Counted from the stretch's first letter, positions 4,001-46,839 are shown. The stretch is 64,000 nucleotides of DNA from Macrostomum lignano (GCA_002269645.1 NIVC01002459.1:80286-144285); one strand, 5' to 3'. The notes: generated by a model from the letters alone, not told the origin. Translations and numbers: made by a program.

Positions 4001-4503
4001 GCAGCTGCACTGGACCGACTTAAAGCATTAATATCAATATTTTTTAATTTGACTGAATACAGAGAAATTTTGAATGGCCCAGCGGGACAAATACTAAAAT
4101 CTAGTGCGTGAGTACATATAACGATTCAGATGTAAATTTGACAGAGTAACAAAAATGATAGTTCTACGTGCAAAAGTAGTCAGAGTCTCTAACAGAACAT
4201 TTTCGGTCTTACAGCTCTTGTTAAAACACCCGAGCTACACAAGGAAGGCTACACTAGCAGTAAACTCATAGTCTGTTCAATAATAGTTTCTTAAAGATAA
4301 TAGTAATTCAAGTTGCTCCGCTCCCTCACTGGCTCAGCTCTCAACTCTCGAATTTGCGATGGACCCGCCTCACTGAGCATTTCCTGGTGTTGGAAGGACA
4401 CGGGTGCGCGTTGATGCAAAGAATGAAAATGCAAATAAGCAAGCATGTATCCCACCGAAAGTTTCAGAGCGTCTTACCGTTTTCCAACGGGGTGGCGCGA
4501 ACT

Positions 4504-7500
4504 TTACTGGAATGACACCCACTGGCCAACTTGTCTCCATCGCTCTCGAGCCACGGCCGGTACTCCAATCATTTCTGAAGCTGCTCTCATGTTTTCCTGG
4601 ACTTTAGAGTTTCGCTTGTTCCTTTGCATAAGCAGAATGACTACTATAAAAGTCACAACTAGGCAAAAGGCACCAACTGAAGCACCAACAGCGATGCTAG
4701 TGTTGTCGCTGCCATTCTTTATAGTAGGCTGCAAAGCTGATTTCACATCAAGAAGCCGCAGGTACTCCCAGGACACAGTTAGGCTGCTGTTGCTCAGGCT
4801 AAGTAACACGAGCTGGCGGTTGTTCATGAGCTGCACCAGTAGATACACAGCGAAAGAAGCACTAGTGTTGGCACCAGACTGACTGTTGACGGTAAAACTG
4901 ATAAGAACGCTACCATTTTTAAACTCCATGTCAGTTAGTTGCGACTCGACGAGCCTTAGCTGACGCGCAAGCTGACCCGTCAGGTGGCTTCGAAGGCTGC
5001 TTTCGTTGGTAACGACGCTGGAGAATGACTCTGTAACCCTGATTTGGAGTGTCACAGCTACAGTGTCCGTCTTTGAGAGTGTCGGAGCCGTTACAGGAGG
5101 TAATGTAGTCGTCGTGATGCTGTTCCAAAACGTTGCAGCTGAAGTTTGCGTCTCTGAGAGTGTCGACTGCAGTGTCGAGTGTCGGCTAGTCTCACTTTTG
5201 GTGGTAGACGGAGCGATAGTTGTCTCCGGTTGGAAGCCTGGTGGTCCCTCAAAGACGCCAATGAATGAGGATATGTCATGGCACACACACGTTACGTGCC
5301 AGATGCCATCGTCGGTCTGGAATGGCGCGCGAGTCGTGCAGTTATCCGGGGTCCAGTCGGCTCCGCTCCAGCTGCGGCATATGAGGCTGATGCTACTGAG
5401 ATTCACAGAGCCACTGATGTTGGTGGTGATAGCCACACCATTGCTGAGGCGTGAAACATTCTGGTTCGCGCCGTCGCTCGGGTGAAAAATTCCTACGTAG
5501 GCCAAAGGACTGCGTCGCGTGGAAATCGTTGGAGAAGCCACTTTGGCCTGTGGAGTGAGCAGATCCTTGTCCAGCAGGATGGTTCCGATGCAGGCACCGT
5601 CCTGGAAGCAGTCAGTCTGGCCACATGACCAGTTATAGTAGCGCTGTTCAAGATCGGCTCCCAGTGCAATCTGCTGACGGACTTTGAAATTGGATAGACA
5701 GTCGGTGCTTCCTGAGTCGCATCCCATCTCCAGATTGGCTGAACCCACCGAATTGAAAGAAGTCTTGTAAACGCGTACAACAGCCATTGTAGACGCTGCC
5801 GCTTGAGCTAGCGAGTTCGGATTTTGGTTGTTGCAGAAGGCAGGCACGGTGTTAAGAATTGTAGCCTGGATATCGGCAGCTGCTGTCGAGTCAAGCGTGG
5901 AGTGATAGACTCCGGATGCAATTTCAAGGACGGACTTCACTTCAGAGGCAGTTATTTTACTTGTTGTTCCACCCTGAGATCCCGATGTGTCGCGCCTTCT
6001 CCTTGCGCCATTTGGTGAATCTGGTGAAAACAACTGAGAATGAAACGCATCAAGGCACTTTTTAAGAGTTCTCAGTACCAAGTTTGTTATGTACTGCTTG
6101 TTGGCTCTCGTTTTCCGAAACAGTTGACAGCTTGTTGCAGTCCTCAGACACGATACTGATGGCACACTGAAATAATCGATAAAGTTTGAATAAAATACCA
6201 CCCATTAGTTATTCCACACTGCTGACAGGACAGAGGAGTTATACCTTGTGTCTAAAGTCAGAAGATCCTGAATCGCTAGTCCCTGCACTAGCTCATTCTT
6301 CTTGTTCTTTTCTTCGGGCGATAGACCAGTATCTGGCTCACTCAGAATCATTCCTCCTAGAGCTGGAGCGTCAACTGTAATGCAAGTTATGATATCGATA
6401 CTGTGTTAATTCTAATTTTGCTGCAGTAATATGAAAATAAAATCGAAAATAATTTGATCGCACTCACAGCTGTTTGAAATATTGTTCAAGTTGTTTAGTA
6501 AATCGTCAAGCTTGGCAAGCGTTAGCTGTTTCGCTTGCACCTGAATTGCAGTAGTAAATGAGAACCAATCTGAGCCTGCTCCGTTAGAGTCGATGGCTGA
6601 AGCTTTGCAGATCCAGTTTCCTCCAGGTAGATGGGTGGTGAGCAGAGTCTAGCGGGCGTTGGTTCACTAGTTACGCTGACGCACTGGCTTGATGAATCTT
6701 GGCGACAGCACATGGCGCTGTAACTGAAGAACACGTCGGAATCGTCAGTAATATTCGGCCATATTGTGAGCGTGAAGGAGGTCTCCAGAGCGGCTCCTTG
6801 GGTGGGAGTCACAGACAGTGCTCCACCACTTGGCGGCGCATTGACGCGGAAGTCGAACTGGGCCTGAGCGGTCCCGGAACTGGCGCTGGCAATCAAAAGC
6901 AGTTGATAGGAGACACCGGCAACAAGCTGCAACTCCGTCCTGGCTGGAGAACCAAAGTGATGAAGCAGCGACGATTGGGTACGCATGTATCGGCCAGCGG
7001 CGGTCCTACTGAGCACTGCTCAAGCGACAGCGAGCCAAAGCCAGTCTCTTGAGTTTCCACTGACCATTGGGTCTGAGTGATCTCACTGGCAATCACTAGA
7101 GCTGTCACATGGACAACAGCGTTTGGATTGATTGGTTTGTTGCTCGGTTCGGTCAAGATCCGGACTGATGGAGGCGGACGAGGCAAAATCTGCACAAGCT
7201 TTGTACTACTGGACCGTCGCTGACCCCGCTGACAACTCACAGTGAGGTTCATGAAGCCTGAGGGTAGCTCGTATACACTGGGATTCGGCCAAGGCACTTG
7301 GATACTGTTCGATGATGTCTGAGTTCCATCCGAACCGAAGAAGCTAAATGAGGACAGCATGTTCCCCGTGTGTATGTTGCGCATGTAGATTGCCTCACCG
7401 TTGGCCCGTTTGGTCAGATAGAAGGTGCAAAATGTCGTCTCGGTCGAGTAGTCGATCGATGATGTACACGGATTCCTGCAGTGCTTCGCTGACGCCGAGA

Positions 7501-10500
7501 TCAGAGCGGCCTCCGCGAAGGAAAATGGGAATCAGAGGGCGGCTGATGGTCTCCAGAAGCAAAAAGCCGCACGCCACGCTGGGCCAAGTCGGCATGGAAG
7601 CGCAGACACTGAGGTTGTAGGTCTGGCCTCCTTGCAGGACTCCAGATCTCAGTCGGAAGAATTGACCTGTGATCCCATGTTGTTCGACATTGACGGCTCT
7701 AGTACCACCCACGATCTTCCATTTGTACTGCAAAAGTAAAGTGTGGAGGTTAAGAGCCTAATCAAGTTATTTTATTGAACAGTAAAGAACAGGCGTACTT
7801 TTTATTCGATAGTAAGACATTTTACTAATATCACAATTACGCTCGTACGATTTGTTATAGTCTTTGCATCTATCATCGTGTTCTGATGCACGATTTCTAC
7901 TATACCGGTAAGCGTTCTCAGAGTACTGTTACTTACACTCAGACTGTCGATAGCCTTGATATAGCAAAATGAAGGTCGGACAATAAGCACAGCACTGTAC
8001 GGCTGATCGGGCATCACATGCTTTTGCTGTCCGTAGATATTAATGCTGAATGGTGTTCGTTCGTCGAGTCGTTTTACTACAATGCTCGCAGTATTTGACT
8101 GCGTTCCGCATTCGTTCTGGGCAAAAGCCGTGATGTTGTATGACTCGCCAGGTGGAATCTGAAGATACAAAGCAAAGAAATGAGAATGTGAGCTGATGAA
8201 TATTTTGGAGTTATATTCTCTGACTTGAGCACTTGGAGAGCACTAACATCCTTTCCGGCGTAGAAAGTGACTTCTGTAGAAAATTTTGACTGGAATGCGG
8301 CCAGCTCAGTTGTTTGACAGGTCGAGCCTGTGGCACAGCGGATGTCCCAAGTGATCCGCTGTACCATCGATCCTCTGACGGTGGCATACAGGGTAAACGC
8401 GTCGCAGAATCCGACGGTGGCTACATTGTTGGCATCTGACTGGACTCCGGCCAGAAAGATGACTGGCGGCTCCCGACTGTTTGTATTCACAACAGCGTTG
8501 CTGACACTGGAACTGGTGGCCAGGCTGACGTCACTGCCATCCACATAAATGATATTCGAATTGATGCTGATTCGTGAGCCAGAGCAGATTGCAGTACCGC
8601 GATCTTTCCGCACGATGAGAACGTTTGCCCGCGCGTAGCACTCTGAGCCTGAACCTATCAGCGCAAGAGTCGACGCATTAAAGATGGCTGAGCATGCTGT
8701 CTGTCGCAGTTGGATGTTTGTGTCAAACTCGAGACGCAGGTGGTAGCCAATGGCGTCATCAGTTGCTGAGAGCAGCACTGGACCCTTACTCGAGCGTATC
8801 GAGAGCGACAGAGAGTTTTGCCTGGTCGGTGATTGCAAGAAGTGTAATCAATGTGTCACTAAGTCAAGGACTTAGCTCAAATAGTTATATTTGTAATAAC
8901 GAGAAACAAGTCACTCACTTGAACACCGCAATGCATCGTGCTGAGTGTCTGCGGCTTGCAGTTCATGACGCTGAGCTTCCATTGCAACGGCTGTCCGACT
9001 TTGGCCAGCGCAGAGATGTTGCAGGTGACACTGGTCGCGCTGTCGAATATAGCGGCACAGTGAGAAAGCCAGTGCGCGGGTCGCATCGGGTGTGGCGGCT
9101 AAGATCGTCGCAGTAGAGAAGGCAGGCGAGATCGGGCGTGTTGACGAATCCCTGTCCTCTCACTGGCAGAGAGTAAACGGGATTTTCTAGTGTGAGTCCA
9201 CTCCCGACACTCAAGCTGACAAGCTGGGAGGTCCAAAAATAGTCAAGTTTCCACCGGAAACGTCCTCGATGACTGTAGCACCGGAAGCGGTCAAGTATTT
9301 CACCTGCAGGGCGTACTGGCCCGCCACGAGACTCAAAGGTGCGGAAAAGCGGAACAGACCAGAAGATATATCGATGGACAATGCTTGAAGCTCCATGTAG
9401 AAGGACTGTCAATGCGAAAGCAGAGAAAATCTTTTTTATTTTATTAACGTTACTTACAAACTTATCAATTAAAGCTTCAGGATTCTGAGTCTTACTGGAA
9501 TTATTATCTAGACTGCTTTATGCACCTGCATCTACTATCAGTGTAATTATACCTTCAGGCAAGGAAAGGTTTATTTCCTTTTTGCTTTTTCGTCATCATC
9601 TAGATAAATGTACGAACTACACGGCTTGTACAAATTTTTGCCGCATTTTACATCGTTGTGTAAATTCGTGCGATTTGATGGCGGCGTAAAAGAGCTTTTG
9701 GTTTATCCTAGAAAAATGGAATTGATGCCTTACCCGATCGGTCACCCTCATCAGGCGCAGAGCAATTGAGCTGATTGAGATGTTGATGCTGCTGCTGAGG
9801 ATCGTCACTTGCTGCTGAGCAGCGTACGACCCCACGCATGCATGTCGGCTTATTGTGAAGTGAATCCGATCGCAGATGTCTCTTGTGGGTCACTGGGCTG
9901 TAGACAACGACCGCATTTGTCCAGAGTCTTTCGGAGCGACACCGATGGCTCAACGACACCGTCACAGCCTGTGATACAAGAAGTGTCGTTGCTGCAGCCG
10001 CAAGGTCCCACGCCGAAGTTAGTGGATCGTCCGGTGCTTCCCTCGGTACAGAAGCCGCACTTATTGGTGCGCGCAGTTCTGTTCACGTTGCCATCGCACC
10101 ACACCGAGCGGATGTACTCATCAGCAGTCGGATATCGACTGGAATTGTAGCACAGACCAGGGATTGGCGAGACAAAGGATCCATTGCATCGACCAGCGCA
10201 GTCCTTGCCATATCGCATGGCTTTGCCAGTTCTTCCACCAACGCAGTTGCCGCAGTCGTTCCAGATCGCTGTGCCATTCGCATCACCGTTGCAGTCGATG
10301 CATGAGCGACCATTTCCACCACAGATTTTACAGACATCAGTCTGGAGACCTGACCACGGCTGATTGTCACAGCCAACCGTCACTGGACGTACCACTACCC
10401 TGGCTGCACTTTTGTTGACCACGCTACTGACAACGAGTGGGTTGATGTAGACTTGTTGTTGATCGACCAGCTTCTCTGCGGCTGTAAAAGCAAGGATGGC

Positions 10501-13500
10501 GCGACTGCGGGACCAGGACGCCGGGACCGTAGGCCGAAATCGGATCGAAGCGTTGGCTGGGAGGAACATCGCGGTGACAGGCCCCGTACTGTTGACGTCA
10601 TCTGCTAGGAAGTCAGAGAGCTGCTGCGTGGAGGAAGATATAGATGAAATGCTTCCCACGCACTGGATGCTTGAGAAGGCATCCGCAGTTTTTGCTGAGT
10701 CCTTGAAATGCGACAGCATACGGTACTGCTTAAACGCAGGCTTGTCTGCGATACATTCAAAGTCTGCCAGGACATTGAGTTCGGCAGCTGGTACTCCAGA
10801 ACACCACTTGCATCGTCGCCGAAGCCTTGCAGAACGAGAGCGCCCAACTCGGATGTATTATCGTCACAAAAGAACATTGATACCATGTCGCCGACCCGAA
10901 TCTGGGTGCCGTAGTTTTCTCCGTGCCGTTGCAGCATGAAGCCTCGCTCTCGCTGTAATTTCTGACTCACGTACTCGTTCTCCCTGTCTTTGAGAACACC
11001 AAAAGTAAAAAAATCTTTATTCACAACAGGAAGATGCTCGTTGTGCAGCACGCTGATCTTGAAGATGACTGTCCCACCCATGGCTGTAGAAGGAAGGACG
11101 GATGGAACAAGAGAACCAGAGCTGGTGTAGCTGAAGTAAGGCGGCAGTCCACTCCAAGCCTGGCACATCAGAACGAAGGTCTTGGTAGCGGCATTGCGAT
11201 TTGGTTCGAATCGTATGTGGGCTTGGCTTGGACTCGGAACGAGAAAGCCTCTCATGTACTCGATGATACCGCTTGCTGTGACTCCACTTCGGAACGTCAG
11301 TTTTCCGTAGATGTCAAGCCTGAAAGTTAAACAAAAAACATATGCATGCATCATATATTTTACCGGAGCCACAACTATTCACATGATACATTAATCATTC
11401 TACTTTTATTTTATTCAGTAAAATATTAGGACTGATTTATGTTTCGCTTCTTTGTACATTGCTAACAACGTTTAGAAGCGGGTAAGATTCAAAAGCAGGA
11501 GTAAATTTACCACACTGGCTCCACCATGTACTTGCAGAACACGCCACCGACAGTCGAGGACTCAACCGCTGAACGCATGTTGCAGACACTTCGCTCGGAG
11601 TGCAGATCAATTAGATTGTCGAGTCTTAGATCGCACACACTGCTGCTCGGGAACCCGTTTGGACTCAACACCAGCACTGTGGAGAGAGACACATTCAGCA
11701 CAGAAGTGTCCATGACGCTGAGGCTGGATTTAATCAGTGTCACATTTGGAGGTAGAGCTCTCGGAGGTAGGAGCACAAAGGTTCTCATAACGCATTCTGA
11801 TCCGTCTGGAAGTAGCAGCGAGTACGTGAGATTGATAAGTACATTCTGAGCGCCGTGGACGAGAAACTGGAAGCAACTGTCGGGTCTGATCGGCTCTGAA
11901 CTTCCGCTGACGTTGATTTTGCGACCATCCAGCTCCATCTCGATACCTGGTGCCGGGCTGACAAAAAGCACTCTGATGCGTGCGGCAGACACAGCGCCAA
12001 GAATGTGACCTGTGCGACAGACACCGGGGTCCGGAGCACCCCTGTACAAGCCCTTGAATCCAGAAACGAGCTGGGCAGCTGGCAAAAGCCGATGAGAGCG
12101 AGGGCACAGTTGGCGGCAGTTGGCGAAGTCCAAGCAGGCACCGAATGCGTGAGGACAGGCAGTCTAAGGGTGAGCAGTTTGAATAAAACAACATCGTCAC
12201 CGCTCATTAGACATACGTAATGCAAACTATGATCTTTTGCACCTGCTACGAATGTAATTATGAAATATAGAAAGCCAAATGCATTATGCCACTCACCTCG
12301 TTGACGCCCTCGCATATCGTGAAATTTTGAGGCAGAGACGCACAGAAGCTTGACTCAGCTGTAGCATTCTCGCAAACACCGTTGGATGGACAGAATCTCT
12401 GAAACGAGCGGCATTTTTGCTTCACTAGATTAGCATGTATTGCTGAGAATGCTAATAATAGCCACTTTAACACTTACCTTGCCTTTTGCGTTGCACTGTG
12501 CACCCTGCTCGACAAGAGACAGCACACAAGCAGCCTTGCAGAGTAGTAAACCACTGGGTGGGCAGGCAACCTGCGTAAAAAGACAGCAATTGATTTTATT
12601 TGAAGTTGGAACAACACGAAAAAATCAGAGAGTAGCTTGTACTCACTTTGTATCGGCAATCTCTGGGCTTTTCTGTAGTCAGTTGATCGATTGTAGTTTT
12701 CGGATTGATTGTAGTAAGAGGACCAACCGTAGTCCGTTGATCGGTTACTGTGGATGTCTGTGACTCAAGGGTAGACACAGAGGGCAGCACTGTTGAGTCC
12801 ATACTCCGCGTTGTGCTTGAACAGGATCCAACAGGGGCGCATCGCTTGAGTTCCTCACAGTATGTCTCAGCCTAAAAAATAATTTTAACGATTACAGAGC
12901 AACAGAAAACTCAGATGCACATAAGAATGACAGAAAAAAACCTTACAGAGCTGCAGTTCGTCGGTGCTTCGCACAAATCACCAGAAGGAATGCAAGTCTT
13001 TGAAGCCAAACAGGGAACATAGCCAGGATAGCAGCTGAATGAATACTCAATTCGAAGAATCTCGTCTCCAAAGTAGTTTCCGTCAGTTGGAGGCGTGCCT
13101 TGCACCGGAAGCAGTCCGTTCCACAGTCTGCATGTCAAATTGACCCTGCCCGGCTGTCTTAGATGCGCTTTAAAGTATGAGCCTTCAACCGATAGCGATA
13201 GATATCCTGAGCCGAACTTATAAGGTGGAGCGCCAAGATAGTGGGCGTAGAACGAATATTCGGTGTAGAGCGACGACGCCTCGATGTAGCAGTAGGCAGC
13301 CTTCCTCGGCGTCTCTCGACACAGCTGACGAACGTGGTCGTTAAATGAGGATTTGGGAAATTCGGCCTGACCGAGACTGTCGCACCACGGCGCAGATGCT
13401 GTGGACTGGTTCAATACTGAGCTTAAAATATTCCTTGGGATGATAATTTCATTAATGTGAGAAGTGCTGTTCTTTTTCAGCACGACCGTTGGGAATCCAG

Positions 13501-14316
13501 CTGGTGGCGGTCGCAACTTCGGCGGAAGCAGCAATCCGAAAGTAGGTTGACACTCTGCGACTACTTTGTTGTCTTTGTTGACGTAGCGAAACCTCAGCTT
13601 TACCCACGATAGACTCGCATTGGAGCCGGCGTATTTGGATATTTCCTGTGCGTCTGCGCTCTCACAGATGCTGTTATCAGGAAGCCTGTTGAGTTGGATT
13701 TCCTCTCCGATGCGGCTGTTGTTGAGTTTGTTAGATCCAAGTCTCATCACAGGAGGACCCGCTTGCTGCACAACGGTGAAGCGAAACTTCAGACGCGGAA
13801 GAATAAAGCAGGAGGCTGCAGGCCACACAAACGGGATAAGCAAATTTTTGTTTGGACACGACCTCTTTGCCACCACTTCATCGCACTGAGCCTGTGTTAG
13901 GCACATTTGGTATCCGGGATTGCATCGGATCAGTGGCTCAGTGCTGGTGCGTGTGGCATTGTCACACGGGCTGCTCATGTAATAATTACAGTTGTCCAAA
14001 GACATGTGAACGGTACTGTTGTAGCAGATTCCTTGTTTCGGGCAGAAACTCTGAACATTGGAGAAAGACGTAACATCGAAATGCTTTAGAGAGATCAAAT
14101 CTGAAGAAGACCTCGGCATGCCATTATTGTGTCGTTTCAAATGATTTTTTAAGTCTACCCATGCTGCCACAATGTCGTTCTGATTGCTAGTCATCAATAC
14201 TTTTGGACTTTTTAAGTTTAGGTCGATCAAATACTTCCGATTTTCCGATTTTTTAATACTTTTTTCCAGACACTTTTTTTCCAGGGGGTACCGAAAGTTA
14301 CAAAATGCAAAAGCCA
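4504..14316 (-). CDS. Large single-pass membrane protein with REJ region and GPS/GAIN motif (polycystin-1/REJ-like ectodomain), plus SEA-like domain and one TM; multi-exon, with several frame breaks
   Basis: Exons with phase-compatible GT-AG joins: 14316-12947, 12871-12647, 12570-12478, ~12419-12297, 12163-11511, 11319-10722, 10662-~9733, ~9408-8919, ~8822-8233, 8158-7937, 7727-~7399, ~7343-6468, 6374-6245, 6166-4504 (the join into the ~8822 exon was not phase-resolved). Motifs: REJ (VNAPPSGGALSVTPTQGAALETSFTL; AIDSNGA), GPS (CRSW..W...C...CVCHDISSF), Ser/Thr stalk, FKNGSVLISFTV, TM SIAVGASVGAFCLVVTFIVVILLM, short basic tail. Confidence 0.8.
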
Positions 14317-15038
14317 CTGCAAAAAATACCTTCAGTGGTTATGCAACCTCAATTTTGTTAATCCCCTATGCTGTTAATGAGAATTCGATTACAAATAGTT
14401 TCGACGAATGATGTATTTAAAAAATGAGCCTTTATCAAAACAAAAGATTAAAGAAGTATTTTGAATAAAAATTTAACGTTTACCTTTGCTGTTTTGTATT
14501 CTATTCATACTTCTTGCCGAATAATTTTGGTTATGCAAGAATCAGTACTGTTAATAAATATCTACTAACTCTATTAGCATATCAACTAATGTGTTTACTA
14601 ATCTATTACTAACACTAACAGTGAGCTTTTGGTCGTTACTTCGTAGCATGCACTTTTTTCCTGATTTTTGCCAAATATTGTTCTTTGAAATTAGATTCCG
14701 ATTACAATTGATAGCAATCTAAATATCAATAATTTATTATAGTCAAACTTGAATAGGTTCAGAGGTCTCTATTCAAGTTTAGGCTGTTAAATTAGTTGAG
14801 GTAATATAATTTTATTTCTAAAAGGGTTTTGGATGGGCTATTCAAGCTCCATGTATATATGGACTAGATTAATTCCCATAAATAATCTATAAAATAGTCA
14901 ATAACCCTAATAAGCTACATATAATTGGGTTGAAGCTACCAAAAAATGAAGCTCATATTTTAAATCAGCACCATCAAAAACCACTAGAGACAAAATTCTA
15001 ATATTCTCAAAACTACAAACAACAAAATAAGTAACCTT

Positions 15039-15581
15039 TTGCTAAAGGAATTTAAAATTGGTGGCTTGAAAACTATTCTGTGCGTCGACACTGAGAGTAA
15101 AATCTCTGCAATCCCTCACAACCTGGCTGCAAAGACCGGCCTCGAAATTCAAAGCGACAACACCACGTCTCTGAAAGTGTATGGAGGCTCTCAGGCAGCT
15201 GCTTTTGGAGTGCTGAGGCAGGCTGCGGTCAAGGACAACAGCGGGAAGAGCGCAGTCAAACAATTTTCATTGAACTTCATTCGACAACTTCATCTGATAC
15301 CAAACTTGGACTCAAGCTTAAAGTGCGCTGCTGTCACTGTCAACGATGCAAACAAATTCACAGCAAGCTTTCGCCTGAACTATGAAGTATCATTCAAGGT
15401 TATGTGCTACCCAGTTCCATCACTGTCATTCTTAATGAAAACTAATGTCGAGATCGAGTTGAAGAGACTTCTGGGCGCAGGCAACATTTATCCTGCTCAA
15501 AATCCGATGGCTGGTGTTGAAGCTCGAAGGACCAGCAAGAGCAGTGCGAATATGCGGAGACTACTCAGTGATACTCAATAG
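15039..15581 (+). mobile_element. Decayed Ty3/gypsy-like retrotransposon fragment (aspartic protease and start of RT)
   Basis: ILCVDTESKISAIP resembles the retropepsin DTG(S/A) motif; CYPVPSLSFLMKTNVEIELKRLLGAGNIYP resembles the RT N-terminal motif; the RT core is absent. Confidence 0.6.
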
Positions 15582-15799
15582 ACTCATCTATACAGATCAA
15601 TACAAGCCTTTTCTAGTTTCTTCTACCAAAGCTAGAAGAAATTCTTCATGCCATTCCGAACGCTAAGCATTGACATCGAGGTCCGTCATCGACCTAGAGG
15701 ACGCATAATTACAGATAGCCCCTACAGAAGAGAGTCAAAAGTTAACTTGCATCTCTATGCAAGTAGTGAGATATAACAATAAGGGGGTGCGCTATGAGA

Positions 15800-16760
15800 G
15801 TCTACTAATTAACCCAGTCGACTGAACAGCATATTATTATATCATAACAAAAACTATCGAGGTGTCGAAAAGACATTACCCACACCAGATGAAGCTCTAG
15901 CAAAGAAGCATATAGCTGATGAGAAAATGATTGCTGATTTAGATGCCATTCCAACCAGTGACTTGCCTGTGAAAGAGAGACTCTTTCGAAATCTAGTGAA
16001 ACGTATCATTGAGGTCAAAGTTTGCTTTGGATCAGGCATTCAAAGTACTAACCCCAAAAATTGCATAGACTGCTTAACCATATATGAAAACGGTCTTAGT
16101 TATAAAGATGCTGTAAAATTGCATAAAGCATATACGAGTAGAAAGCCAAAACCCATTTAGGAAAACTGATTCACTATGCAAAAGGCACCATTTGGCATGC
16201 TGTTTGACACGTTACGCTTGGACAGTCCCATTTAAAAAGAAAGGCAGAAGCGGAAGTTGCAGAAGCTTCCAAAAAGTATTTGAGGAATCAGGGAGACGAT
16301 CGGAGAGACTTTGTGTTGATGAAGGCAAAGAGTTTTAAAATCAGCATATGTACAAGCTCTACTCATTTTTAAATGACAACGTAAGAGAGAAGAATAAAAA
16401 TGGATAGTATATTAACAAGATGTGACCAATTTATGGTGAATCCTTAGACTGCAATGATTGAGCGATTCAACTACACTCTCACAAATTAACTCTGGTTTGA
16501 ATTCGATCTACAGGGTAATCAGAAGTGGTTGAAAAATACAACAACACAATTCATTCTGAGATTAAACTAAATCTTTAAGAGCGAGTACTATAACCTTCCT
16601 TTGAGTTTACAGATGTGAACCAAACTTTAATGTAGGTGACAAGGCGCATATCTATAGATATAAGGAGCACTTTGAGAAAGGTTGAAAAGTTTACTGGAAA
16701 ATTTTGTAAGTGTTCACCATTAAGAAAGTCTATCTGGTTACAAGTACTTTTCTTGTTGGC
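15800..16760 (+). pseudogene. Polinton/Maverick (adintovirus-like) integrase pseudogene
   Basis: Collinear motifs across frameshifts and stops: AWTVPFKKK, FQKVFEESGRRSERLCVDEGKEF*N, MIERFNYTL, YNNTIHSEIKL, PNFNVGDKAHIYRYKEHFEKG*KVYWKIL*VFTI. Confidence 0.75.
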
Positions 16761-17750
16761 CTACGCGTAGTTGAATCGTTAACATCCTCAATCTTTTGCA
16801 TATCACGTAGGCGCTATTTATCAGTAGCTACAGATGGCATTTTTCTAAATAACCGTGGTTGTAAAATAAAAAAAACTAAAAGGATTGTTGCTAGTGCAGA
16901 AGGTGGCGCACACGCCTACTGCTGCCTGCAACAGTACAATACAATGGAGAGACAGCAAGAGACAAGTGGCTCTGGGGCAAGGATGAATAGAGGCCAGCGC
17001 ACGAGGCCAACTTGCGAGGCCAATTCACGTGCTTATTCTCTCGCTATCGCGCCTACTTGTGTATTATTCGCCTAGACTATACAAGGAATAGAATTTGAAG
17101 AAACTTCTAACTAGAGCGGAGCCTAAAAGCGGCGCCTGCAGCCCCCCTGCGACCGAATAGGTACGTGCTCGGTCTGGTCCGCGGGAAACAACTCGTACGC
17201 AGACAGGCAATAGTCAAAACCGAATAAAATAAGATGAATGGAGCAAGTGTTTTTTGTCACTACCTGCATGGGCTTGTATTACTATTAGTTGGTGGCGAGA
17301 GAAAGATTAACCCTCTTAGCATTTACAATACCGAGTTTCTGTGTTGGCAGTTGCTACCCAGCAAGGTTGGGGCGAGATTAGTCAGGGTTTTGTGTAAAAT
17401 ACCTTCCGTCAACTGCCAACTTGTGAATTCTTCACAAGAGATAACTGTTTGGATTCTGGACTGCAAGCGGTGCCTATCTGAGGCATTTTTCAACCAAGTT
17501 TTTGTGTGATGTAGTGTACAATAGACTCATATGAATGACCTCACAAATGCTCTTTTTAAATATTCATACTAATAGATCTTTCTAGCACGCATTTATCAAT
17601 AATTCGAGTGTAAGTTAAATGCATGATCTTAATTCAACTCATATCGCTACAGCTATATTTCCTTTATTAAATGTTGAAAATGTACAAGAACACTACATTA
17701 CAGATACACATATACATATAACATGAAACCAGTAACGTCAAAGCGCTCAC

Positions 17751-18245
17751 CAAGTTATTTAAACGACACTGCTGCTCCTTATCCAGGAGGCGTTCTAAAC
17801 AGGCGCTCATGTTTGTGCAGCCGTTAGCAGCAGGACAGTCGAACTCCCCCTGTGGTTTAATACAAAGGCGTCATGAGTTCAACCGGCACATAAAGCTTTT
17901 AAATTTGACGTTAAGTTAAATTAACGTTATGCGGGACATTCTTGACTACAGTTTCCTGTATTAAGACTTGATTGCGATATATTTTGTAAAGGCTCTGAGT
18001 ACTCGTAACTCTTCATGGCCGTTTACAACGGCATAAAAAACAAATATGAACGCCATCAAACGGGTTGTATATCTACATTTTTTGCATCCAATTGTATAAT
18101 TGTATTTAAATAACAATTCTACATAAGCCAGTGAGTCAGTCAAATCACTTACTGCATCCGAACAATTTCTAATCGCAAATACGTCTTGAGGTCCGGTTAG
18201 CAGCAGCTGCAGGACCAGCCAGAGTCCCAGCATGGCGCCTGCCAT
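17751..18245 (-). CDS. Probable 5' exons (signal peptide) of the large REJ/GPS receptor gene
   Basis: MAGAMLGLWLVLQLLLTGPQDVFA-IRNC from 18245; clean 99-nt exon 17849-17751 (ccacag|GEFDCPAANGCTNMSACLERLLDKEQQCRLNNL|gtgagc). Linkage to the 14316 exon is inferred. Confidence 0.5.
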
Positions 18246-27769: not shown

Positions 27770-29192
27770 TTCCACCCCCTCCTACAAACTCAGCAATCAT
27801 ATTATTAATTCCCAACTTCATGGAGATGCAGCAGTTGTCTCTTGTATATCCCACCCCCTCCTACAAACTCAGCAATCATATTATTAATTCCCAACTTCAT
27901 GGAGATGCAGCAGTTGTCTCTTGTATATCCCACCCCCTCCTACAAACTCAGCAATCATATTATTAATTCCCAACTTCATGGAGATGCAGCAGTTGTCTCT
28001 TGTATATCCCACCCCCTCCTACAAACTCAGCAATCATATTATTAATTCCCAACTTCATGGAGATGCAGCAGTTGTCTCTTGTATATCCCACCCCCTCCTA
28101 CAAACTCAGCAACCATATTATTAATTCCCAACTTCATGGAGATGCAGCAGTTGTCTCTTGTATATCCCACCCCTCCTACAAACTCAGCAATCATATTATT
28201 AATTCCCAACTTCATGGAGATGCAGCAGTTGTCTCTTGTATATCCCACCCCCTCCTACAAACTCAGCAATCATATTATTAATTCCCAACTTCATGGAGAT
28301 GCAGCAGTTGTCTCTTGTATATCCCACCCCCTCCTACAAACTCAGCAATCATATTATTAATTCCCAACTTCATGGAGATGCAGCAGTTGTCTCTTGTATA
28401 TCCCACCCCCTCCTACAAACTCAGCAATCATATTATTAATTCCCAACTTCATGGAGATGCAGCAGTTGTCTCTTGTATATCCCACCCCCTCCTACAAACT
28501 CAGCAACCATATTATTAATTCCCAACTTCATGGAGATGCAGCAGTTGTCTCTTGTATATCCCACCCCCTCCTACAAACTCAGCAATCATATTATTAATTC
28601 CCAACTTCATGGAGATGCAGCAGTTGTCTCTTGTATATCCCACCCCCTCCTACAAACTCAGCAATCATATTATTAATTCCCAACTTCATGGAGATGCAGC
28701 AGTTGTCTCTTGTATATCCCACCCCCTCCTACAAACTCAGCAATCATATTATTAATTCCCAACTTCATGGAGATGCAGCAGTTGTCTCTTGTATATCCCA
28801 CCCCCTCCTACAAACTCAGCAATCATATTATTAATTCCCAACTTCATGGAGATGCAGCAGTTGTCTCTTGTATATCCCACCCCTCCTACAAACTCAGCAA
28901 CCATATTATTAATTCCCAACTTCATGGAGATGCAGCAGTTGTCTCTTGTATATCCCACCCCCTCCTACAAACTCAGCAACCATATTATTAATTCCCAACT
29001 TCATGGAGATGCAGCAGTTGTCTCTTGTATATCCCACCCCCTCCTACAAACTCAGCAATCATATTATTAATTCCCAACTTCATGGAGATGCAGCAGTTGT
29101 CTCTTGTATATCCCACCCCCTCCTACAAACTCAGCAATCATATTATTAATTCCCAACTTCATGGAGATGCAGCAGTTGTCTCTTGTATATCC
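27770..29192. repeat. 79-bp tandem repeat, about 18 near-identical copies, upstream of TRAF
   Basis: Identical ORFs recur every 79 bp in the ORF track. Confidence 0.95.
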
Positions 29193-29349
29193 CAATCGCG
29201 TTGCGCTCCAACTAAATGCGTACAATTCAATACCTCTTATTGACAGCAAAGTCAGGAATATTCACTTCCTAATATAGTCTCAGTTGAAGCAAAACATTTC
29301 CTGTTGAAATATTTGATCCTCAATAGGTGCAACTAATCAACGAATCCTC

Positions 29350-29800: not shown

Positions 29801-30319
29801 TGTCGAATCATTTATCCAATTATACATGGGTAAATCTAATCTTTTTCTCCCAGTTAGGGAAGCAGCAAATAAGGGGATAAAACAGTTTTTTACATCTAGC
29901 GCCAAGGCATGATTGCAATTAGTGCTGGTCACGCTTATGCCCGGGGAAAACTTACTCAAACAGACTCAAACTACGGCATGCTAGAGTGGCTGTGCACCGG
30001 ATTGCCATTCTAGCTACTTCGTATTGTGTGTTGTTTTCCAACCATGCCAGTACTAGAAATCTTATTAAAATATTTTAGTACAATGGAAAAGTCAATCCAT
30101 CTGCAACGCCAAGGACCAGAATGCCAAGGACCTCTGCATACTGGTGGACTGGAAACATGGCTGAATCTACCCAAAACCCTTCTAGTTGCGAGTTCACGTT
30201 TGTGACAAAGTGGATCAACAAACTATTATCTTTGGACTGTACCCTTTCAAAGGCGTTCTAACAAGTTTAAAATTTGAACATTTTCTAACACTTTCTCGAA
30301 AATATGTTTAGGATAGTAA

Positions 30320-31195
30320 TAATCCCAATCCCGATTCCCATAATCCCAATCCCGATTCCCATAATCCCAATCCCGATTCCCACTATCCCAATCCCGATTC
30401 CCATAATCCCAATCCCGATTCCCATAATCCCAATCCCGATTCCCATAATCCCAATCCCGATTCCCATAATCTCAATCCCGATTCCCATAATCTTAATCCC
30501 GATTCCCATAATCCCAATCCCGATTCCCACTATCCCAATCCCGATTCCCACTATCCCAATCCCGATTTCCATAATCCCAATCCCGATTCCCATAATCCCA
30601 ATCCCGATTCCCACTATCCCAATCCCGATTCCCATAATCCCAATCCCGATTCCCATAATCCCAATCCCGATTCCCACTATCCCAATCCCGATTCCCATAA
30701 TCCCAATCCCGATTCCCATAATCCCAATCCCGATTCCCACTATCCCAATCCCGATTCCCATAATCCCAATCCCGATTCCCATAATCCCAATCCCGATTCC
30801 CACTATCCCAATCCCGATTCCCATAATCCCAATCCCGATTCCCACTATCCCAATCCCGATTCCCATAATCCCAATCCCGATTCCCACTATCCCAATCCCG
30901 ATTCCCACTATCCCAATCCCGATTCCCATAATCCCAATCCCGATTCCCATAATCCCAATCCCGATTCCCACTATCCCAATCCCGATTCCCATAATCCCAA
31001 TCCCGATTCTCATAATCCCAATCCCGATTCCCATAATCCCAATCCCGATTCCCACTATCCCAATCCCGATTCCCATAATCCCAATCCCGATTCTCATAAT
31101 CCCAATCCCGATTCCCACCATACCAATCCCGATTCTCATAATCCCAATCCCGATTCTCATAATCCCAATCCTGATTCCCATAATCCCAATCCCAC
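30320..31195 (+). repeat. 21-bp minisatellite (ATAATCCCAATCCCGATTCCC)
   Basis: Directly visible; inverted relative of the 32895-34080 array. Confidence 0.95.
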
Positions 31196-31884
31196 TAATC
31201 GCCTACTCCCTACCCCTGTCCAGGTATCGCAGAGGTCCATGGCTCACAGGAGCAGCCCCCATACCGGATGGGCCACAGCCCCACCAGAGGCAGTAAAAAC
31301 GACCACCCACCCCATCCGCAATTCAATTTCGTTAGTCGCCCCGCAGACTGCACACGCAGTCGCTCAGCCTGGCAACCCGCCGCCCTCACACTAGATGCCC
31401 GCCACCCCAGTCAACTCGTATTCATAATGAATAATTCATAACTCTTTAACAGCGGGCAACTCTAGTGAGGAAGCTGACAGTTTTAACAGAGAAGATGAAG
31501 CAGAGCGGAGCCTCGCTACGCAGAATCTTCCTGTTGTTGCTTCTCAAGCCGCAAGTAATTGTAAGATCTGTTTGCTGAAAATCTCTTTAAATAGAATCGT
31601 TTACCTTCGCCATACAGGCTTTGAAATTGTAGTGCACAACTGAAGTGCATGTAAACAGGCAGAATGTGCTTATAATCGAGTCGCAGCTTTAACTGCCGAA
31701 ATTATGAAGTGTGATTGACTAAAGAGATTTGAGTGGATACTGAATTGCTGTTTGTACAGCCCAAGGTTGCTGTTGGCAGAAAAAGTGGGCTGCTGAACTT
31801 CATGACGGAAATTTGCGCAGAATGGGTTTAAAATAATTTCTGTCACAGCGCTGAAAGAAAAGTTGAAAAGTTGGATCGGCTTTT

Positions 31885-32560: not shown

Positions 32561-32894
32561 GTTCAGAATGGGAACTGGTTTTCAGAAAAACTGGAACAGA
32601 GGTTTTTGGCTTTTACGGAAAATTTTACAGGGTTTAAAACGGGGAACTAAGAAAATTTAAGCAACGCTTTGAAGCGGAAGCAAAAATGTAGATATCGACT
32701 TTTATTATGAGCTGAAACTTGTCAAAAGTAAGAGTCAAAATAAGTTCAATAACGCAATTTATTTGTTTAATTTATAAATTCATCGTATTATCCTATGAAA
32801 ATCACATTGCCTTGAAACAAAAATATTTTTTCTGAGTGCAATCTTAATACAATTAATAGAGGCTAACCAAGTTGAATTTAATTCATACAATAAA

Positions 32895-34080
32895 CTGATT
32901 GGGATAATGGGAATCGGATTGAGATTATGGGAATCGGGATTGAGATAGTGAGAATAAGGATTGGGATCATGGGAATCAGGATTGAGATAGTAGTGAGAAT
33001 AAGGATTGGGATTATGGGAATCGGGATTGAGATAGTGAGAATAAGGATTGGGATCATGGGAATCAGGATTGAGATAGTAGTGAGAATAAGGATTGGGATT
33101 ATGGGAATCGGGATTGAGATAGTGAGAATAAGGATTGGGATCATGGGAATCGGGATTGAGATAGTGAGAATAAGGATTGGGATCATGGGAATCGGGATTG
33201 AGATAGTGAGAATAAGGATTGGGATTATGGGAATCGGGATTGAGATAGTGAGAATAAGGATTGGGATCATGGGAATCGGGATTGAGATAGTGAGAATAAG
33301 GATTGGGATTATGGGAATCGGGATTGAGATAGTGAGAATAAGGATTGGGATCATGGGAATCAGGATTGAGATAGTAGTGAGAATAAGGATTGGGATTATG
33401 GGAATCAGGATTGAGATAGTAGTGAGAATAAGGATTGGGATTATGGGAATCGGGATTGAGATAGTGAGAATAAGGATTGGGATCATGGGAATCGGGATTG
33501 AGATAGTGAGAATAAGGATTGGGATTATGGGAATCGGGATTGAGATAGTGAGAATAAGGATTGGGATCATGGGAATCAGGATTGAGATAGTGAGAATAAG
33601 GATTGGGATTATGGGAATCAGGATTGAGATAGTGAGAATAAGGATTGGGATTATGGGAATCGGGATTGGGATAGTGAGAATAAGGATTGGGATTATGGGA
33701 ATCGGGATTGAGATAGTGAGAATAAGGATTGGGATCATAGGAATCAGGATTGAGATAGTAGTGAGAATAAGGATTGGGATTATGGGAATCAGGATTGAGA
33801 TAGTAGTGAGAATAAGGATTGGGATTATGGGAATCAGGATTGAGATAGTGAGAATAAGGATTGGGATTATGGGAATCGGGATTGGGATAGTGAGAATAAG
33901 GATTGGGATTATGGGAATCGGGATTGAGATAGTGAGAATAAGGATTGGGAATCAGGATTGAGATAGTGAGAATAAGGATTGGGATCATGGGAATCAGGAT
34001 TGAGATTATGGGAATCGGGATTGGGATTATGGGAATCGGAATGATGATTATGAGCAATCCTGATTGGAATTATGGGAATT
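32895..34080 (-). repeat. 42/45-bp higher-order repeat of two diverged 21-bp monomers
   Basis: Unit GGGATTATGGGAATCGGGATT+GAGATAGTGAGAATAAGGATT. Confidence 0.9.
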
Positions 34081-44986: not shown

Positions 44987-45687
44987 AATAAATATAAATA
45001 TAATTTGTTTAAATAGTTTAAATTTCATATACTAGAAGTATTTCATCTGATGGCACTATTGAAGTTGGCCTAGATAGACATTGAATTCTGGTTGTTTTAC
45101 TCCCAAACCATTTTGCCCATAGTCTGTTTTGCCTATAAACCAGATTGGTTATAGGAATTTCAGCCAAAATGGTAATTATATAATTTTGAGATATAGCTAT
45201 ATTGTATCTTTATTTACTTTTTCAATGCTAGTTTATAGTTTTATTGAGTAAAAAATATGATCTGATTTGTTGCTACAACAATTTTTTTTATTAGAAGCAA
45301 GGGGGTTGTATGCACCCTGGCACACTTTAAGCAACATAGGCACATAACTGGCGAGAGGCATTACTGCCCATTCTGCCAACTCCCTTGAGCAGGCATACAA
45401 GCGTGTGGATATGTACGCAGTCATACGCACAGGCACACACTCACACAGGAGTTATACATGCCCAACACCCGTCCAACCCATCCGAACTGGACAGGTGAAA
45501 TGGCCGCTGGCCAAGGTAAGTCGCAAAATGGAAAATGCAAAAAACGAAAAAATTGGGAGAAGAAAGAAAGGAGAGGAAGAGAAAAGGAAAAGAAAGGAGG
45601 GAGAAGAGAGAGAGGGGGAAAGAGGAGAAAGAAAGAGAAAGAAAAGAAAAGAGAAAAAGGCAAGAAAAGTCATATACAAAGTGAAAA

Positions 45688-46725
45688 TTAAGTCGCAATC
45701 GGGAGGAACTAAGTCGCAATCGGGAGGAACTAAGTTGCAATCGAGAGGAACTAAGTCGCAATCGGGAAGAACTAAGTCACAATCGCGAAGAGCTAAGTCG
45801 CAATTGAGAGGAACTAAGTCGCAATCGAGAGGAACTAAGTCGCAATCAGAAAGAACTAAGTCGCAATCGGGAGGAACTAAGTCGCAATTGAGAGGAACTA
45901 AGTCGCAATCAGGAAGAACTAAGTCGCAATCGAGAGGAACTAAGTCGGAATCGAGAGGAACTAAGTCGCAATCAGGAAGAACTAAGTCGCAATCGAGAGG
46001 AACTAAGTCGCAATCGAGAGGAACTAAGTCGCAATCGAGAGGAACTAAGTCGCAATCGAGAGGAACTAAGTCGCAATTGAGAGGAACTAAGTCGCAATTG
46101 AGAGGAACTAAGTCGCAATCAGAAAGAACTAAGTCGCAATCGGGAGGAACTAAGTCGCAATCGAGAGGAACTAAGTCGGAATCGAGAGGAACTAAGTCGC
46201 AATCAGGAAGAACTAAGTCGCAATTGAGAGGAACTAAGTCGCAATCGAGAGGAACTAAGTCGCAATCAGAAAGAACTAAGTCGCAATCGGGAGGAACTAA
46301 GTCGCAATCGAGAGGAACTAAGTCGGAATCGAGAGGAACTAAGTCGCAATCAGGAAGAACTAAGTCGCAATCGGGAAGAACTAAGTCACAATCGCGAAGA
46401 AGTAAGTCACAATCGAGAGGAACTAAGTCGCAATCAGAAAGAACTAAGTCGCAATCGGGAGGAACTAAGTCGCAATCGAGAGGAACTAAGTCGCAATCAG
46501 GAAGAACTAAGTCGCAATCGAGAGGAACTAAGTCGCAATCGAGAGGAACTAAGTCGCAATCAGGAAGAACTAAGTCGCAATCGGGAGGAACTAAGTCGCA
46601 ATTGAGAGGAACTAAGTCGCAATCGAGAGGAACTAAGTCGCAATCAGGAAGAACTAAGTCGCAATCGGGAGGAACTAAGTCGCAATCGAGAGGAACTAAG
46701 TCGCAATCGAGAGAAACTAAGTTGT
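45688..46725. repeat. 21-bp minisatellite (GGAACTAAGTCGCAATCGAGA), about 49 copies
   Basis: Directly visible; explains the TKSQSRG ORF. Confidence 0.95.
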
Positions 46726-46839
46726 CTTGAATCCCATATTCTAAATCGTCTTAAAATCCTCTGTAAAGCCTTTTTAAATACCATATCTTGTTTTCCCTGT
46801 TTGCAAAAACTGACTTCCATTGTCCAGACTCAGACTCTC

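Follow-up and report, generated by a model that had tools for sequence, protein, structure and literature searches.

In this study, we analyzed a stretch of 64,000 nucleotides from Macrostomum lignano (GCA_002269645.1, NIVC01002459.1:80286-144285; hereafter the window) and focused on a gene on its minus strand (18245–4291), which carries a REJ domain and a GAIN/GPS region upstream of a single transmembrane (TM) helix. The gene product probably belongs to a pan-bilaterian family of single-pass surface glycoproteins of type I, which would be furin- and SEA-processed, could be shed from the cell and may serve in adhesion or sensing. Starting from the N-terminus, the predicted protein consists of a signal peptide, Cys-rich modules and CGxC repeats, β-rich repeats, the REJ domain, a long helix, a polybasic site, a GAIN-fold domain, a mucin-like linker, a SEA-like domain, the TM helix and a short tail. 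The product comprises about 2,730 residues (about 2,805 if a possible cassette exon is included), and its ectodomain contains 48 N-glycosylation sequons and 106 cysteines. An earlier, sequence-only reading of this DNA had described a product of ~3000 residues between 4504 and 14316 with Cys-rich repeats, REJ motifs, a GPS motif, about 60 Ser/Thr/Pro-rich residues, a SEA-like segment and one hydrophobic helix. All of these elements were recovered here; the protein is shorter than stated and the gene longer, beginning at 18245 with the signal peptide and ending at 4291.

The REJ assignment is based on the Pfam family PF02010, which matched with E=5.9e-13 in the window (6522-7016, minus strand) and with E=1.5e-16 in the best-matching M. 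lignano protein, P0001 (UniProt A0A1I8H4L1, "REJ domain-containing protein", 2,506 aa). Several relatives gave strong full-length REJ matches, down to E=7e-54. Apart from this, Pfam found no GPS, SEA, TIG, lectin, EGF, PLAT or ZP domain in the M. lignano proteins. A segment in exon 8, which had been labelled IPT-like, showed no Pfam TIG match at E≤1, and the family sub-alignment profile gave only chance-level matches against the PDB; this label reflects a motif resemblance only. Similarly, a profile of the M. lignano protein P0005 gave a single, non-significant PDB match, to ADAMTS5, at the CGxC region.

For the product of exon 13, an AlphaFold2 model was built on a 23-sequence family alignment. 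In a Foldseek search, the GAIN region of this model matched BAI3 (4dlo, E=2.5e-9), BAI2 (8oek, E=9.2e-9) and latrophilin (4dlq, E=1.9e-6), followed by CD97 and Gpr126; altogether, GAIN structures account for five of the six matches at E≤0.001 (E range 2.5e-9 to 4.8e-5). In addition, the family profile weakly matched the GPS stretch of ADGRF1, ADGRB2, BAI3 and ADGRL3 (E=8.5e-4 to 0.013). The last two strands of the modelled domain carry a GPS-like motif with the pattern CRSW…W…C…CVC-HDISS-FIGVFEG. Across the family, the Cys/Trp framework and a Leu or Ile at −1 are kept, His never occurs at −2, and position +1 is usually occupied by Gly, with Asn, Arg or Ala as further residues. M. lignano reads Asp-Ile-Ser, which provides the Ser at +1 but neither the His at −2 nor the His-Leu-Thr tripeptide. 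Autoproteolysis at the GPS takes place at a His-Leu/Ile-Thr/Ser tripeptide, in which Thr or Ser at +1 is indispensable (PMC9539791). Judged by these residues, most family members are predicted to be unable to self-cleave at the GPS, because they have no Thr or Ser at +1. A further conserved element is the polybasic, furin-type site in the loop between the long helix and the GAIN domain, which was present in 10/10 family sequences covering the region (RRRR, RRRKR, RKKR and KRKKR types).

Between the GAIN domain and the membrane, the protein carries the mucin-like linker with a Ser/Thr/Pro content of 55%, compared to 24% in the whole protein. In a paralogue, this stalk is about 120 residues long. 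No tandem repeat was found in the linker, unlike in the long repeat Pro/Thr/Ser domain of MUC1-type membrane mucins. The linker is followed by the SEA-like domain, for which Foldseek returned EpCAM, Trop2, IA-2, phogrin and dystroglycan with probabilities of 0.92-1.0, EpCAM and Trop2 being the best matches (TMq 0.63-0.72). The matched domains are juxtamembrane SEA or SEA-like proteolysis modules, and SEA domains without a structured neighbour, for example those of MUC1 and IA-2, are constitutively open to proteases (PMC6586460). On the level of sequence profiles, Pfam SEA (PF01390) did not match the M. lignano proteins or their relatives at E≤0.1-1, and the SEA sub-alignment profile gave chance matches only against the PDB. 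The β2-β3 turn of the model holds a Gly-Ser pair (4914-4909), read as NG/SVLISF in the window. Both residues are invariant in 15/15 sequences, with most relatives reading GSI[IV]V. The autoproteolysis site of dystroglycan is GSIVV, with Ser as the nucleophile, and by analogy with MUC1 we take the β2-β3 turn to be the cleavage turn of the SEA fold. Hydropathy predicted exactly one TM helix in this protein and in every relative, C-terminal in each case. Past this helix (window 4626-4600), the tail shows a small juxtamembrane pattern conserved across phyla, in which a basic cluster is followed by Lys/Arg and then Val/Ile approximately 10 residues after the helix (e.g. QRNKRNSKV, QKNNQQQKKI and KYKKQRDKV).

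The same arrangement was found in other animals. An exhaustive HMMER search with the C-terminal 901 residues as query yielded 92 proteins. In the best of these, the alignment starts at the REJ end or at the GAIN domain and covers the TM helix, 80-160 residues after which the protein ends. The GAIN–mucin–SEA–TM module order is common to relatives from an annelid (Dimorphilus gyrociliatus), bivalves (Potamilus, Mercenaria, Mizuhopecten and Mactra), a bryozoan (Bugula neritina), an amphipod (Trinorchestia longiramus), a sea spider (Nymphon striatum) and amphioxus (Branchiostoma lanceolatum). These relatives bear automatic names only ("uncharacterized", "PKD/REJ-like domain-containing", "GPS domain-containing" or "GPS motif protein"). 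A word-indexed homology search with the last exon alone gave no match and missed even the identical P0001, and the same was true for the family alignment; probably, Ser/Thr low-complexity and TM words swamp the candidates in such searches. Besides that, a single TM helix close to the C-terminus was predicted for P0019, P0022, P0050, P0062, P0078 and P0081, which match in the REJ part only. REJ proteins with one membrane pass may therefore be more frequent than published work implies.

Single-pass proteins combining REJ and GPS are already known. In the sea urchin, SpREJ1, SpREJ8 and SpREJ9 have one TM helix, a GPS and a REJ domain, and SpREJ1 is a heavily glycosylated sperm protein binding the fucose sulfate polymer present in egg jelly (PMC1934368). 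They share with the M. lignano protein a large glycosylated ectodomain, REJ, a GPS upstream of a single TM helix and the lack of an 11-TM channel module. However, their published description places the GPS before the TM helix and reports no SEA or mucin module (PMC1934368), whereas the M. lignano protein has a stalk of 60-120 residues and a SEA-like domain between GAIN and TM helix, a polybasic site ahead of the GAIN domain and a non-canonical GPS tripeptide. SpREJ1 also contains C-type lectin and EGF domains, neither of which was found by Pfam in P0001-P0004. The premise of the sequence-only reading that GAIN/GPS is normally followed directly by the seven-transmembrane (7TM) bundle of adhesion G protein-coupled receptors (GPCRs) or the TM/PLAT module of polycystin-1 proteins therefore has published exceptions in SpREJ1/8/9. 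Its suggestion of an undescribed single-pass class agrees with the architecture and with the absence of a PLAT or polytopic module from the gene, the rest of the window and all relatives, but single-pass REJ/GPS proteins as such were known and the relatives were already present in databases.

PKD1, PKDREJ, PKD1L1-3 and SpREJ3-6 likewise carry REJ followed by GAIN/GPS in the ectodomain. In contrast to this family, the M. lignano protein lacks the PLAT/LH2 domain, the 11 TM helices and the channel domain, and the GPS His-Leu-Thr is not kept. Multi-pass forms of the canonical type are represented by the coral REJ skeletal protein and by the planarian PKD genes. Adhesion GPCRs (BAI2/3, latrophilin, CD97 and GPR126) provide the best structural matches to the GAIN domain, but the M. 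lignano protein lacks the 7TM domain and carries its SEA-like domain after GAIN, beside the membrane. SEA and GAIN also occur in one ectodomain in ADGRF1. As there is no 7TM domain, tethered agonism by the last GAIN strand is impossible. The protein belongs neither to the PKD1 family proper nor to the adhesion GPCRs.

With MUC1, dystroglycan, IA-2 and EpCAM/Trop2, the protein shares a Ser/Thr-rich segment, a SEA or SEA-like α/β sandwich and a single TM helix, and the Gly-Ser-[Ile/Val] motif at the β2-β3 turn resembles the dystroglycan site. Compared to the membrane mucin and dystroglycan cassette, however, the Ser/Thr/Pro segment is short and non-repeated, similarity to Pfam SEA is missing, and a PKD1-type ectodomain lies upstream instead of mucin repeats, cadherin-like or thyroglobulin domains. 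The likeness is limited to the juxtamembrane cassette. A literature search for single-pass proteins with REJ and SEA or with GAIN and SEA found no description of a REJ–GAIN–mucin–SEA family, and a search for Macrostomum together with REJ or egg jelly found no paper linking them. New with respect to the literature found are the mucin–SEA cassette between GAIN and TM helix, the conserved polybasic site together with the degenerate GPS, and the breadth of the family.

When exons of the window, roughly concatenated, were used as query, five M. lignano protein models were matched (79-92% identical to the query), in agreement with M. lignano as the source. Over most exons, P0001 and the minus-strand translation of the window are 98-100% identical. 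The gene model was built from splice signals with guidance by the matched proteins, and a paralogous locus (L001, contig NIVC01001490.1 of assembly GCA_002269645.1) was used for comparison. The model comprises 14 exons, starts with a signal peptide and has GT-AG introns throughout (26/26 splice sites canonical). P0001 skips an additional in-frame exon of 225 nt, parts of which occur in the paralogue models P0003 and P0004. This exon may be a cassette, in which case a second mucin-like patch would be added close to the N-terminus. Relative to P0001 and L001, the window copy shows ten coding indels of 1-2 nt: nine deletions (~10750, 9883, 9218, 9053, 8939, 8930, 7453, 6926 and 4600) and one insertion of 2 nt (~6647). 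After bridging them, one open frame runs from Met1 to the stop. The frame cannot be traced through the window by splicing alone. A splice-only model, with introns at for example 10721-10624 and 7398-7344, was dropped, as P0001 and L001 show continuous coding sequence with 1-2 nt indels at these positions.

The end of the protein is affected as well. Read literally, the window gives the tail of about 40 residues with a stop in the same exon that had been described before, but this apparent end at 4504 is due to the 1-nt deletion at ~4600. Past this position, P0001, P0004 and L001 continue with NSKVPE…PPRWKT, splice from 4478 to 4383 and finish with NLNYYYL and a stop at 4291. The intact cytoplasmic tail therefore has about 97 residues and needs one further small exon. 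Public models of the paralogues are damaged too: the last GPS strand and some of the stalk are missing from P0002 and P0004, where they are spliced out, and P0003 stops early in a shifted frame. P0004 carries the name 'ZP domain-containing', but matched no Pfam family. In locus L001, a single open frame (7874-10177) covers the complete GAIN–mucin–SEA–TM–tail module. Between the window copy and L001, the ratio of nonsynonymous to synonymous substitution rates (dN/dS) was 0.11 for GAIN, 0.30 for SEA and 0.39 for the pre-furin helix, at a synonymous divergence (dS) of about 0.24, which indicates purifying selection on the tested segments. The window provides an example of how the indel-ridden assembly of the M. 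lignano genome distorts gene models.

Table 1 Coordinates of the exons, domains and sequence features of the REJ/GAIN gene in the window (pLDDT, predicted local distance difference test; pTM, predicted template modelling score).
Feature	Position	Strand	Description	Evidence
Exon 1	18153..18245	-	ATG at 18245, signal peptide MAGAMLGLWLVLQLLLTGPQDVFA	Sequence reading, GT donor
Exon 2	17751..17849	-	Small Cys-rich module GEFDCPAANGC…	Match to P0004 residues 156-190; AG/GT sites
Exon 3	12947..14050	-	N-terminal Cys-containing region, no Pfam match	99.7% identity to P0005 residues 1-369; splice sites
Candidate cassette exon	12647..12871	-	225 nt, in frame; Cys-rich and Ser/Thr-rich	AG/GT sites
Exon 4	12478..12570	-	Cys-rich module	
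Exon 5	12297..12398	-	Cys-rich module	
Exon 6	11511..12163	-		
Exon 7	9734..11319	-	CGxCxGG-type Cys repeats at 10383-9883; frame breaks ~10750, ~9883	
Exon 8	8919..9405	-	Segment formerly labelled IPT-like, 9214-8940; frame breaks ~9218, 9053, 8939, 8930	
Exon 9	8248..8821	-		
Exon 10	7937..8158	-		
Exon 11	6468..7727	-	Bulk of REJ domain; frame breaks ~7453 (2 nt), ~6926, ~6647 (+2 nt)	
Exon 12	6245..6374	-		
Exon 13	4478..6166	-	Single exon with helix, polybasic site, GAIN, mucin linker, SEA-like domain, TM and first part of the tail	
Exon 14	4291..4383	-	Last 30 tail residues EMLSEAGPSQ…NLNYYYL and TAA stop	
REJ stretch	6369..7252	-	Profile positions 176-435 of 452; crosses intron 6467-6375	Pfam
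Polybasic site RRRR, furin-type	5992..6003	-	Low-confidence loop	pLDDT below 50 at residues 47-65
GAIN-fold domain	5245..5958	-	Residues ~70-307 of exon 13 product	Block pLDDT mostly 77-95
GPS-like motif CRSWSGADW…C…CVCHDISSFIGVFEG	5245..5379	-	Last two strands of GAIN-fold domain; Asp-Ile-Ser at canonical cleavage position	
Mucin-like linker	5065..5244	-	60 residues, predicted disordered	
SEA-like domain	4738..5064	-	βαββαβ; residues 368-476 of exon 13 product	Separate model: pLDDT 87, pTM 0.81
Single TM helix IAVGASVGAFCLVVTFIVVILLM	4627..4695	-	Predicted helix	Hydropathy 2.79
1-nt deletion	4598..4602	-	AGT-CCAG vs AGTCCCAG; makes apparent stop 4504-4506	

The ten frame breaks in the window copy are likely indel errors of the assembly, because the deletions are one-sided, the splice sites are intact, the identity to P0001 between the indels is high and the dN/dS relative to L001 is low; most likely, the window copy encodes the same protein as its intact relatives. 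Alternatively, it could be a pseudogene that arose by duplication of an intact paralogue or homeologue and is now decaying, in which case the locus makes no full-length protein. The ten frame-disrupting indels relative to P0001 and L001 would fit such a decay, and several close copies of the gene are suggested by the five M. lignano models (79-92% identical to the query). Nevertheless, we consider this rather unlikely: deletions of 1-2 nt in one direction (9/10 indels) are typical of long-read consensus errors, all 26/26 splice sites are canonical, identity between the indels remains at 98-100% over most exons, dN/dS does not exceed the range of 0.11-0.39, and in-frame stops occur only where shifts cause them. 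Far less probable still, and in our view hardly credible, is that the window shows a canonical polycystin-1-like gene incompletely, with its PLAT and 11-TM exons located farther downstream or joined through alternative splicing. It is true that an ectodomain with REJ and GAIN is the hallmark of the PKD1 family (PMC1934368) and that one more exon exists past the previously assumed stop. However, this exon encodes 30 tail residues and a stop and does not lead on to TM or PLAT exons, relatives from seven animal groups also end at a TM helix and a short tail, Pfam found no PLAT match in the M. lignano proteins with their tail of ~97 residues, and the DNA downstream of the gene contains short open reading frames (ORFs) only. 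When the window was searched by tblastn with 104 proteins, among them polytopic REJ proteins for which 7-9 TM helices are predicted, there was no PLAT, polytopic or channel match and nothing outside 4291-18245.

Two further alternatives concern processing and role. The M. lignano GAIN domain might be autoproteolytic at Asp-Ile↓Ser, like the GPS-cleaved ectodomain of SpREJ/PKD1 proteins, with SEA as a second joint. The +1 Ser and −1 Ile fit the required positions, the window copy has a His at −3, the GAIN domain shows the lowest dN/dS among the tested segments, and GPR125 cleaves with Ser-Leu-Ser despite having no −2 His (PMC9539791). We still regard this as unlikely, as no family member has the −2 His, +1 is mostly Gly, Asn, Arg or Ala, and L001 has Arg in place of the −3 His. 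Regarding the role, a gamete-recognition receptor similar to SpREJ1 would be compatible with the favoured architecture, and both the precedent of this single-pass glycosylated REJ and GPS sperm protein with its fucose sulfate polymer ligand (PMC1934368) and the several diverged M. lignano paralogues speak for it. The lack of a Pfam lectin (CRD) or EGF domain, the lack of positive selection in the segments tested by dN/dS and the lack of a paper tying Macrostomum to REJ proteins in our literature search make such a role improbable. Several points weigh against the reading as a furin- and SEA-processed single-pass family. The window copy, taken literally, is not translatable end to end, and each processing step is read from motifs. 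GPS cleavage is possible in M. lignano, given the Ser at +1. The fold matches are 'SEA-like' and mostly non-self-cleaving domains, with classical mucin SEA structures falling outside the top 50; Pfam GPS and Pfam SEA are silent in the relatives as well, and in the amphioxus relative, the SEA-like segment is degenerate and lacks Gly-Ser.

Taking these points together, we still favour the reading as a furin- and SEA-processed single-pass family, which suggests the following course of events. A furin-type proprotein convertase would cut at the polybasic site, and self-cleavage at the SEA Gly↓Ser, as in MUC1 and dystroglycan, could leave the fragments held together non-covalently. The large outer part, presumably adhesive or ligand-binding, would thus be tethered to a juxtamembrane joint that can come apart, with a flexible, glycosylated stalk in between. 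If the ectodomain came under force, or if a second protease or sheddase acted on the exposed SEA-like domain, the outer part could then be released, in the manner of shedding or of a mechanical fuse, and a short membrane stub with the ~97-residue tail would remain and may signal. In most members, the GAIN domain would be a structural cap rather than a self-cleaving, agonist-presenting module, because the +1 nucleophile is missing and neither a 7TM nor an 11TM partner follows. The earlier idea of a mechanosensitive or shed receptor would be consistent with the conserved SEA Gly-Ser and the polybasic site. One possible, more tentative extension, to which we give somewhat less than even weight, is that the family represents a third membrane context for GAIN: an ancient bilaterian clade of single-pass proteins with a PKD1-type ectodomain, in which self-cleavage at the GPS was lost and the SEA Gly↓Ser together with the furin site took over the force-separable, sheddable role.

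At present, GAIN domains are discussed almost solely as a cap that cleaves itself and presents an agonist in adhesion GPCRs and polycystin-1. In this family, the GAIN fold is conserved but mostly predicted to be unable to self-cleave, is joined to neither a 7TM nor an 11TM module and lies beside a putative self-cleaving SEA joint of the mucin/dystroglycan type. The family would therefore provide a natural experiment on the role of GAIN apart from tethered agonism, and would bear on the swapping of one autoproteolytic "mechanical fuse" for another in surface receptors. The family is widespread (Spiralia, arthropods and amphioxus) and wholly uncharacterised. Since RNA interference and in situ hybridisation methods exist for M. 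lignano, its function is experimentally accessible.

In the remainder of the 64 kb window, no second protein-coding gene was recognised. The 3.7-kb intron 2 (17750-14051) contains an ORF of 180 aa on the plus strand (15039-15581) with a weak match to PF13650 (E=3e-4, below Pfam's cut-off), a retroviral-type aspartyl protease family; this ORF is probably a retroelement remnant. Long ORFs inside minisatellites (e.g. 30304-31296, 32780-34057 and 45405-46730) showed no Pfam match. The minisatellites themselves form about 30 arrays at 324-1021 and 18487-63665, with periods of 4-79 bp and many of them 0.3-1.4 kb long; for example, the array at 27772-29194 has a period of 79 with 99% matches.

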